11,051 nt of DNA, taken from assembly GCA_033442325.1 (NCBI GenBank), contig JAWQFM010000007.1, positions 150,092 to 161,142 of the forward strand, written 5' to 3'. Both the position numbers and the translations under genes were made by a program. Origin of the DNA: Salpingoeca rosetta. Taxonomy: Eukaryota; Protista; Choanoflagellata. Position 1 is the first letter of the stretch, and each line of letters begins with the position of its first letter. Below, piece after piece: positions 97 to 2,679 of this stretch. Under the pieces are notes generated by a model. That model was not told the origin of the DNA. It did not search any database and worked only from the letters and a program-made list of their open reading frames with translations.

Positions 97-668
97 CTGG
101 CCGAGAAAAGGGCAGTGGTGGTCGAAGCGGCGAACGCAGCGACGGCAGTCGAGACAGTGCTTGGTGCGCATGGGCTGAAAGGCCTGGCACACACGACAGA
201 ACTGACGCGGTGGGACCAGGCCAGCGTGCGCTGCAAGCATCAGCGGCGCAGAGTCGCTGCTGACGGTGCTGACGGTGCTGATGTTGTTGCTGCCGCCATC
301 CTCGCTGCTCGTGGCTGCAGTTGCAGGAGCGCCAAGCGTTGGCGCATCTTTCAGCGACGCCAATGACTCGGATGACAGCGACGCGGACGTGAGCCGCGAC
401 TGGTGTGTCGTAAACCCCTCGCCGTGATGACTCCTGTCATCAGCTGTGGGCCCTACCAACAATGGGGAGGCATCACCGTTGATGTCGCCATCATCTTCAC
501 CACTGACGGAGGAGAGGAGTGGCTGGGAGTGTTGCCGCTGGCCATGATCTGGCGCGATGCTGCCGGGCTTGCACATGGTGGTCCAGAAGAACAGGCCGAT
601 CGCCAACACGTATCCCAGCGTGATGGGCACGATGACAAGCGAGCCTGCGCGCAATCGGCGCTGGAACC
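97..668 (-). CDS. DHHC-type protein S-palmitoyltransferase (ZDHHC12-like), exon encoding TM2 + cytosolic loop + DHHC-CRD; gene continues beyond the left edge
   Basis: The minus frame (codons starting at positions divisible by 3) is stop-free from 903 to the window edge. It reads GFQRRLRAGSLVIVPITLGYVLAIGLFFWTTMCKPGSI...RQFCRVCQAFQPMRTKHCLDCRRCVRRFDHHCPFLGQ, i.e. the Cx2Cx9HCx2Cx2Cx4DHHCP signature with DHHC at 123-112. Acceptor ttgcAG ends at 669; donor GT at 96-95. TM2-xPG and 'QPxRxxHCxxCRRCVRRxDHHCP' resemble ZDHHC12 (recalled, not searched). Confidence 0.92.
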
Positions 669-741
669 CTGCAAGACGAAGACACGGACACATGTGAGGC
701 ATGCGCTTCGAAGGAACATGTATAACAAGGAAGCACCTGTG

Positions 742-826
742 CACACACACACACACACACACACACACACACACACACACACACACGCACACGCACACAC
801 ACACACACACACACACACGCACACAC
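742..826 (+). repeat. (CA)n microsatellite forming the CFAP77/DHHC junction intron
   Basis: CA run between donor 826 and acceptor 737. Confidence 0.95.
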
Positions 827-2679
827 CTGAACGTCTGCAGCGTTGGCTGCGCGTTTTGGAACTTCTTCATGGTCCATGGCGGCTGTGCCGGCGCCTCGGG
901 CCGCTGCAGCAGAGGGACGCGACGATTATGTTGGAAGACGGGGGGGGGAGGCAATGGCATTGCGGGAAAAGCATTGTTAAGAAGAAGGCATCTTCGTACA
1001 AGGAGGCACCCAAGCACCCCTGCACACAAACGTCGCAACCCAGAATACACCACCACCACCACCACCACCACATGCTCCTCCCACCTTGGTTCGGAGGACG
1101 GCTGCGCGGGTCATGCCATAGCCTTGCTTGCGCGTGATGCGGGCGTGCTCACGCTCACGCTCTTGCTCGGCGTGACGCTGCGCCAGCCACTGGTCACCAG
1201 GCCTGCTCGTCATCAACTCTGCAACAGACACGCTTTGGCTGCTCAGGTCATGACAACAGGGCAAGCACAACACCAAAACAAGGATGAGAACAGAATGAAG
1301 GGTTGGCTCAATCTCACAAGGCACAAGTAAGACGCAGTCAGATCACAGCAGCACATGAATCAGTGCACACACACACACACACACACACACACACACACAT
1401 ACACACACACACGCACGCTCGTGTAGACACACTAGAGGATCGCTTAACTCCCATTCACGCACACTTGCGCTTACCCTGAAGGTTTGCCGTGCAGCATGTG
1501 GCGGGCATGCGAGTTGTCATGGCCCTTCGGCGCCTGGGGCAGTCGTTGCTTGCGGTACACCACCTCTGACTGGCGCATGCTGAGCTGCTCGCGTGGGGTA
1601 ACCAGGCCGCGGGTGAGGGCACGCTTGTTCATCTCCATGTAGTCGAGTTGCGGCCTTGCCTTTGCTGCGTGCAGGCTCTTTGAGTAACTGTGCGACCGCC
1701 ACGTGTTCATGGCCTGCTCCGCTGTGTCCACCTTGTGCGTCTTCACGCCATGCACCATCTCCTGCATCTGTCGCGTCCCTGTTGACGACGACTTGCCCAG
1801 CTCGTTCTGGGTGTGTGTGTGTGTGTGTGTGTGTGTGTGTGTGTGTGTGTGTGTGTGTGTGTGTGTGTGTGTGTGTGTGTGTGTGTGTGTGTGTGTGTGT
1901 GTGTGTGCGAAGGTGCAATTTATGAGTTTGAAGAAAGAGAGAAAACGAGAGAGAGAGAGAGTGTGTGTGTGTGTGTGTGTGTGTGTGCGTGTGTGTGTGT
2001 GTGTGTGTGTGTGTGTGTGTGTGTGTGAGCATGCTTGCATCGCACCGCGCTGTGCCACACCCTGCTATTTGCTTCACTTTCTCTTGCAAGCCAAAACTGT
2101 CACAACGGCATGTCCTATACCTTCTGTAACAAGACGTTTTGCTGCATGCTGCGGGTGCGTCGCCCAAGCTGCGGAGTGGGCAATGGATCATATCCAACAT
2201 GGGATCCTGGCGGGCGGCGCTTGCGCACCACGGCATCTTCCCGTTTTGCCACTACATCGAGAGAAGGATGGATCGGTGAAACGTGGATGAGTGGGTGGTG
2301 GAGAATGGATGGTGCAGGAAAGGAAAGATGTGTGCACATCACCAACGTGACCTCATATGCGATGAAAACAACACACACACACACGCAAACACACACGCGC
2401 GCACACATCTGCACCATTGCAACATACGCACACTTGCACACTTGCAACACACACACACGTACACACACACAGCTACCCTGCCCTTACTTCCCTCTTCTCC
2501 CTTCCCCTACAATCTCCTCCATCTGTTTGGATCTTACCTTGTGCATCGATGGCCTTTGATGTGACGCCGTGCACCATGTCATGCACTTGCGGGTTTTCTG
2601 GCGTGTGCACACGCCCAATCTCGGCCCGCCGCCGTGCAAGCAGCGTGTTGTACTGCTTCTTCTTTGGCTCCCCTTCCAT
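827..2679 (-). CDS. CFAP77: Cilia- and flagella-associated protein 77 (DUF4483 microtubule inner protein); exons 2679-2538, 2251-2121, 1806-1475, 1238-1085, 903-827; terminal exon ambiguous (668-497, or read-on into the DHHC exon via 736)
   Basis: All introns are GT-AG and phases match (1,0,2,0,2). The spliced protein contains RSMQQNVLLQKNELGK, AEQAMNTW, LDYMEMNKRALTRGLVTPREQLSMR, SVAELMTSRPGDQW, YGMTRAAVLR and PPWTMKKFQNAQPTLQTF. These match, in order, the CFAP77 blocks as recalled ([60 protein letters not shown]). An in-frame TGA lies just upstream of ATG 2679. Confidence 0.85.
1811..2026 (+). repeat. (TG)n-(GA)n-(TG)n microsatellites in CFAP77 intron 2
   Basis: TG runs at ~1811-1906 and ~1961-2026, GA run at ~1947-1961. 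Confidence 0.95.

Follow-up and report, generated by a model that had tools for sequence, protein, structure and literature searches.

An apparent CFAP77-DHHC gene fusion in Salpingoeca rosetta probably reflects sequence missing from the assembly at a dinucleotide repeat

CFAP77 is a microtubule-bound protein of the outer junction of ciliary doublet microtubules (PMC10105768, PMC12551952). It is present in the solved doublets of sea urchin, cow, human, mouse and Chlamydomonas. In nearly all full-length members of the family, the motif T-F-R is followed by a conserved tail of some 33 residues, in which R293, G295 and G300 (R-x-G-x-x-x-x-G) were invariant in an alignment of 35 sequences. Stand-alone CFAP77 with this conserved tail is found, as complete open reading frames of 246-333 aa, in five choanoflagellates other than Salpingoeca rosetta, namely Microstomoeca roanoka, Salpingoeca infusionum, Choanoeca perplexa, Monosiga brevicollis and Barroeca monosierra. 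DHHC enzymes, on the other side of the junction studied here, are integral membrane proteins. The DHHC exon described below shares with the ZDHHC S-acyltransferases (PF01529) the arrangement C-x2-C...C-x2-C...D-H-H-C-P, ahead of which come a helix and the motif (D/K)-P-G, and in the solved DHHC structures two helices precede the Cys-rich domain.

The draft genome of S. rosetta was obtained from 454 reads of approximately 400 bases together with Sanger reads, misjoins were broken manually, and RNA-seq served to refine the public gene models (PMC4054682); the assemblers used were Newbler/ARACHNE. A later assembly, re-scaffolded with Hi-C, was built on the old contigs (PMC10232365). The draft contains a septin gene that was divided by an assembly gap, PTSG_04363/04364, which was merged after cDNA PCR (PMC4054682), and thus holds gene models that are distorted where sequence at a repeat or gap has been lost, as we propose for the locus described below.

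CFAP77 in the window and its public gene model

The window, i.e., the whole stretch of 11,051 nucleotides that was analyzed, is DNA of S. rosetta and not of human origin. It was located on contig 7 of an assembly with 68 pieces and a total of 55.4 Mb, which is probably the Hi-C re-scaffolding of the 2013 draft, and its sequence is GC-rich with many dinucleotide repeats. Exon 3 of a minus-strand gene in the window is 100% identical to PTSG_13170 of S. rosetta (P0001, 335 aa), which is located on scaffold GL832997.1 of GCA_000188695.1 with a gene span of 10001-12183 in the extracted locus (L010), corresponding to 2679-497 of the window. The exons of this gene were searched singly, the only spliced model being the database protein P0001. 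The first-pass annotation had identified the gene as CFAP77 and the sequence following it as a DHHC palmitoyltransferase, and Pfam agreed with both identities (PF14825, 73 bits; PF01529, 36.3 bits). Similarly, three-frame translation and TRF reproduced all of its coordinates for exons, acceptors, stops and the repeat. The exons of CFAP77 are as follows:

2538..2679, minus strand: exon 1, with ATG at 2679-2677 and ending in phase 1; identical to the N-terminus of PTSG_13170 and matched by P0004 and P0081
2121..2251, minus strand: exon 2, based on its translation, on PTSG_13170 (P0001) and on the relatives P0004 and P0081
1475..1806, minus strand: exon 3, the core of PF14825 (73.2 bits, E 2.6e-20)
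1085..1238, minus strand: exon 4, with the acceptor of the public model; two further AGs in the same frame are found at 1243-1242 and 1234-1233
827..903, minus strand: exon 5, with the conserved W-x-M-x-x-F...T-F-(R) and a donor CAG/GT at 827/826 in phase 2; no stop
497..668, minus strand: last coding exon of PTSG_13170 (57-residue tail and TGA 499-497), judged spurious, as it is the DHHC exon read out of frame

Exon 3 alone clears the Pfam cut-off of PF14825 (73.2 bits vs. 24), and exon 4 extends the profile match to position 156 of 157. Exon 3 was also the sole strong match to this family in the genome, CFAP77 being single-copy, and no S. rosetta protein other than PTSG_13170 contained it in the protein collections (108-343 aa). 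The W-x-M-x-x-F...T-F-R block of exon 5 aligns with the solved CFAP77 chains, which were matched with E-values from 4.6e-15 (8snb) to 2.3e-6 (9d5n), as well as with the choanoflagellate orthologues, among which the protein of M. roanoka is 52% identical to CFAP77 of S. rosetta. The introns of the S. rosetta gene measure 158-314 nt. Exons 1-5 are therefore those of a typical CFAP77, whereas the conserved C-terminal exon is absent from the assembled gene. A literature search found no mention of PTSG_13170.

The CFAP77 locus lies on a 5.8-kb contig flanked by a gap of 4054 N and a gap of 732 N, each located at dinucleotide repeats. The 4054-N gap begins one base beyond the window, and a convergent TMEM115 gene is found on its far side. 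The same contig is present at the CFAP77 locus in the Hi-C re-scaffolded assembly, which provides no independent check of the junction because the old contigs were reused (PMC10232365).

The junction and the DHHC exon

As had been observed before, exon 5 of CFAP77 (903-827) ends ...TTC AG/GT without a stop. The region that follows consists of these features:

742..826, minus strand: (GT)n microsatellite directly 3' of the exon-5 donor (TRF: period 2, 42.5 copies)
669..741, minus strand: unique intron-like stretch with a pyrimidine-rich acceptor, AG 670-669 (acceptor B); includes acceptor A, AG 738-737, as well as ATG 702-700, which is in frame
97..668, minus strand: exon from the interior of a DHHC palmitoyltransferase gene that is not annotated, entered in phase 1; contains TM2, K-P-G, a low-complexity insert of about 120 residues and the Cys-rich first half of the domain to D-H-H-C (123-112); donor CAG/GT at 97/96
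1..96, minus strand: start of the following DHHC intron, (GT)n/GC-rich, adjoining the 4054-N gap just beyond the window

Splicing to acceptor A removes a 90-nt intron and keeps frame 1 in a three-frame translation of the minus strand, and retention of the intron likewise keeps this frame. As the first-pass annotation had stated, frame 1 then has no stop between exon 5 and the donor at 97/96, and it encodes on the way one hydrophobic helix, a long low-complexity stretch and C-x2-C...D-H-H-C (123-112). Also in agreement with it, acceptor B shifts the frame and leads to a 57-residue tail ending at TGA 499-497; the product, in which exon 5 is joined to 668, is exactly the public model PTSG_13170. 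Neither intergenic space nor a TM1 was present between CFAP77 exon 5 and the DHHC exon, which confirms a further point of that annotation.

The open frame from exon 5 to the DHHC motif is unremarkable, because the (GT)n run has zero stops in any frame of the minus strand, an intron length divisible by three is expected in 1 of 3 cases, and 22 stop-free codons in DNA of 60% GC have a roughly even chance of occurring. In fact, all three minus-strand frames are open from 826 to approximately 499. Acceptor A is not preceded by a polypyrimidine tract, and the 66 nt gained by using it (735-670) have a GC content by codon position of 0.59/0.45/0.41 in frame 1, unlike coding exons; with a GC3 of 0.41, this stretch looks non-coding in character. 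Between 669 and 499, the GC content by codon position is 0.60/0.51/0.81 in the DHHC frame, like that of the five CFAP77 exons, and 0.81/0.60/0.49 in the annotated CFAP77 frame, which shows that the exon is coded in the DHHC frame.

The DHHC exon scored 36.3 bits against PF01529 (cut-off 28.7), covering profile positions 5-36 of 133, with 50-53% identity to ZDHHC enzymes over the half-domain, and its best solved matches were ZDHHC9 (8hf3), ZDHHC5 and ZDHHC20. It has 190 open codons, an intact Cys-rich half-domain and a coding-type GC3 in frame 1 (0.81 and 0.70), with no sign of decay. The strong pyrimidine-rich acceptor and the entry in phase 1 identify it as an internal exon. Ahead of the Cys-rich domain, it contains a single hydrophobic helix followed by K-P-G, which we take to occupy the position of the family D-P-G motif after TM2, so that only one of the two helices is encoded. 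A DHHC protein of the same unusual layout (P0002), in which some 110 Ser/Thr-rich residues are inserted between TM2 and the Cys-rich domain, has in addition TM1 and about 50 more N-terminal residues; the long low-complexity insert between TM2 and the Cys-rich domain thus sets the DHHC exon apart from other ZDHHC enzymes, and P0002 likewise. Since the exon opens at TM2, whereas P0002 and the solved DHHCs have a preceding helix, the first exon of the gene is missing. No TM1-like exon was found between 827 and 668.

The second half of the DHHC domain, with TM3-TM4 and the T-T-x-E motif, falls in the 4054-N gap, so that the S. rosetta assembly holds only TM2 and the Cys-rich first half of this enzyme. 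No DHHC gene is annotated at the CFAP77 locus by NCBI, and no S. rosetta protein containing the DHHC exon was found in the protein collections (204-647 aa). The other DHHC loci of the genome are separate genes. One of them (C9), whose match begins at profile position 37, was considered as the missing half of this gene and ruled out, as it proved on checking to have its own TM1, TM2 and complete Cys-rich domain.

The annotated tail and the missing exon 6

The general tail profile gave the annotated 57-residue tail -1.7 bits; a control showed that this profile is weak for the S. rosetta clade, and a clade-specific model was therefore built from four relatives (M. roanoka, an environmental relative, B. 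monosierra and S. infusionum) and evaluated by leave-one-out. Each true clade tail reached 15.7-43.1 bits with the model of the remaining three, and none of 500 shuffles scored as high. The annotated tail of S. rosetta scored -3.8 to +0.6 bits on the clade model, and 82% of its own shuffles scored equally well or better; the other two S. rosetta frames gave no score with the CFAP77 tail models. A resemblance of the annotated tail to a family motif (A-R-R..A..H..R-V-G), seen by eye and in phmmer matches to solved chains, was rejected, as shuffles and leave-one-out attributed it to Ala/Arg/His composition only. Similarly, the strong matches P0005 and P0006 in the protein search proved to be repeat proteins, and their similarity to the spurious tail is one of composition. 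The annotated tail is thus non-homologous to that of the family, and the public PTSG_13170 very probably has an incorrect C-terminus over its final 57 residues.

Among relatives for which genomic DNA is at hand, the closest is represented by an environmental contig (L012), the CFAP77 protein of which (P0081) is 55-67% identical to that of S. rosetta, exon by exon. The exon-5 donor is found at the identical codon position in both, reading ACATTCAG/GT in L012 (donor 1880/1881) and ACGTTCAG/GT in S. rosetta. In L012, exon 5 is followed by a CA-rich intron of 184 nt and then by exon 6 (L012 2064-2169), which encodes the tail and a TGA. Given this matching structure, an exon 6 is expected in S. rosetta within a few hundred bases of 827. 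In M. brevicollis, the counterparts of exon 5 and the tail are in a single exon.

Six-frame searches of the S. rosetta genome with P0004, P0081 and the 35-sequence profile recovered only exons 1-5 and no tail exon, for a query of about 34 residues in a filtered first pass; as a positive control, the 29-residue exon 5 was recovered genome-wide with E-values of 5e-5 to 4e-4. Within the 22-kb locus, no segment scored above 3.1 bits on the clade tail model, and a best tail match of 5.9 bits (L010 at about 19.9 kb) was dismissed as random, lacking R-x-G. A tblastx comparison of L012 with the locus gave mostly low-complexity noise, exons 1-5 being the sole matches. The R-x-G-x-x-x-x-G tail of the family is thus not encoded in the assembled S. 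rosetta gene, which we read as missing sequence and not as a sign that the gene falls outside the CFAP77 family.

Readings of the junction and their meaning

We consider it probable (about 0.7) that the assembly has lost sequence at the (GT)n run of 742-826 and that the apparent CFAP77-DHHC fusion is an assembly artefact. Hence, the fusion is most likely not a biological feature, although it was observed accurately, and an assembly collapse across 742-826, which the first-pass annotation had offered as its fallback, fits the data best, both the terminal exon of CFAP77 and the first exon of the DHHC gene being missing there. The locus would then hold two ordinary neighbors on the same strand, CFAP77 and an unannotated ZDHHC-type palmitoyltransferase, which the draft assembly joined through a loss of sequence at 742-826, most likely because two (GT)n arrays collapsed into one or were misjoined; near-identical arrays occur dozens of times in the genome. 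The lost piece would comprise, on the CFAP77 side, the rest of intron 5, exon 6 (about 34 codons with the tail and stop) and the 3' UTR and, on the DHHC side, the intergenic region with the promoter, the TM1-encoding first exon and the beginning of intron 1. Gene prediction may then have ended CFAP77 at the next good acceptor (670-669), reading the DHHC exon out of frame and generating the spurious 57-residue tail. A single loss between 827 and 668 would account for both defects, the lack of a CFAP77 exon 6 and that of a DHHC first exon. The surroundings are in keeping with such a loss, the contig being bounded by two gaps at dinucleotide repeats in a draft whose misjoins had to be repaired by hand and in which a gap had already split a gene. 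Counting against this reading, reads of 400-700 nt could span a repeat of only 85 nt, which makes a simple collapse less automatic. A real deletion in the organism would give the identical sequence, and it is an inference that the loss arose in the assembly and not in S. rosetta itself.

Alternatively, the assembly may be correct and S. rosetta may truly have lost CFAP77 exon 6 and the 5' end of the DHHC gene by a microsatellite-mediated deletion, with CFAP77 being expressed through the 827-668 junction with an overprinted 57-residue tail and the DHHC gene being either dead or expressed from the ATG at 702. Neither assembly has a break in the contig at the repeat, AG 670-669 is a strong acceptor and, with three frames open over 826-499, some product would be made. 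The 827-668 junction is moreover part of the public model and might have read support, since the gene set was refined with RNA-seq (PMC4054682), which also counts against an assembly artefact. However, such a deletion demands the loss of a tail that all relatives examined have retained and in which some residues are invariant, while the DHHC exon is undecayed, no space for polyadenylation is left after the stop at 497, and the region lies between two gaps in a repeat-rich draft. We regard a real deletion as unlikely.

It is quite unlikely that the contig is correct with CFAP77 exon 6 residing inside the 4054-N gap, in which case a very long last intron of CFAP77 would enclose the DHHC gene, or the 741-bp piece with its exon, either as a nested gene or through misplacement. 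The gap of about 4 kb does lie directly downstream, and the gene order in relatives is in line with this arrangement: in M. brevicollis, CFAP77 adjoins TMEM115 with no DHHC gene nearby, the S. rosetta TMEM115 is situated just past the gap, and no DHHC match was found within 7 kb downstream of CFAP77 in L012. Same-strand nesting of a multi-exon gene, with an intron exceeding 5 kb, would, however, be unlike the short introns of this gene, and the DHHC gene would still be without TM1 or promoter.

A very unlikely variant is that the junction is real and that read-through CFAP77-DHHC transcripts are made, either as a chimera or with the C-terminus of CFAP77 replaced by an overprinted peptide from the DHHC exon, following a recent, lineage-specific, microsatellite-mediated deletion.

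The reading preferred by the first-pass annotation was a chimeric unit that places a palmitoyltransferase under a ciliary promoter, or a regulated choice of acceptor that switches between a fusion and a stand-alone CFAP77. When P0001 was compared with 1.84 billion representative proteins, 77 matches were obtained, two of them the spurious repeat proteins, and the remaining 75 CFAP77 proteins or fragments span 44-406 aa, none being long enough for a CFAP77-DHHC fusion; the six longest were scanned and contained PF14825 only, and no protein joining the two domains was found among the 75. A true fusion or switch via acceptor A or intron retention is therefore highly improbable: frame 1 is indeed open to the DHHC motif with the 90-nt intron removed or retained, but this continuity is cheap, the stretch specific to acceptor A is non-coding in character, the product of acceptor B carries a non-homologous tail that is an out-of-frame reading of the DHHC exon, and the fusion would tether microtubule-bound CFAP77 to a membrane enzyme which, lacking TM1, would, judging from what is known of the family, have an inverted DHHC topology.

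If the junction should nevertheless be true, a gene fusion of recent origin or an overprinted tail would be of modest interest as a curiosity. With sequence missing at the repeat as the preferred explanation, the value of the finding lies mainly in curation, i.e., in a corrected tail of PTSG_13170 and in an unannotated DHHC palmitoyltransferase gene. While missing sequence made one gene look split in the septin case, here two genes look fused and the loss is not marked by an N-run. The S. rosetta draft can thus hide missing sequence in dinucleotide repeats without an N-run, which may give rise to false domain fusions, and these matter as the S. rosetta genome is widely used for dating animal gene architectures.

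Splice sites and phase in CFAP77

Window 1243-1242, 1240-1239 and 1234-1233 (within 1231-1243), minus strand: three AG acceptors of CFAP77 exon 4

The exon-4 frame of CFAP77 is preserved by all three AGs, which are spaced 3 and 6 nt apart, and the cluster is possibly a tandem-acceptor site; the public model, PTSG_13170, takes the middle acceptor (1240-1239). Exon 1 of CFAP77 ends at window 2538 in phase 1, the phase required by the DHHC palmitoyltransferase exon at 668, and a splice from exon 1 to 668 would therefore also be in frame. This phase match is a 1-in-3 coincidence and supplies no TM1.

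Assembly gaps and neighbouring genes

L009 (a stretch around the S. rosetta locus) 4039-8092, just beyond window position 1: gap of 4054 Ns
L009 3547-3732, across that gap from the window: TMEM115 (DUF1751) gene, convergent
Window 5807-6538: gap of 732 Ns, with (TG)54 and (AC)61 on its two sides
L010 (a second such stretch) 9424-9744 (window ~2936-3256), plus strand: hypothetical gene model, 106 aa

The DHHC gene runs into the 4054-N gap, which conceals its 3' half and probably also holds the 3' end of TMEM115, the model of which comprises 235 aa in S. rosetta versus 310 aa in Monosiga brevicollis. Each gap seen around the CFAP77-DHHC locus adjoins a dinucleotide repeat.

CFAP77 and TMEM115 are adjacent in both species (L011 5305-9399, from M. 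brevicollis CH991569.1, compared with the window and L010); they lie head-to-head in M. brevicollis and tail-to-tail, with the gap between them, in S. rosetta. In M. brevicollis the pair is not flanked by a DHHC gene.

The 106-aa hypothetical model, for which no Pfam match was obtained, lies in the interval that separates the ornithine decarboxylase (ODC) gene from the start of CFAP77, and it overlaps the ODC leader.

Matches to the annotated CFAP77 tail

In the protein search with PTSG_13170, two repeat proteins of ~1700 aa each (P0005 and P0006) matched the annotated tail in 16-17 stretches with E ~1e-39. We rejected these matches as an artefact of composition and repeats, and they exemplify the strong false matches that a spurious tail draws.
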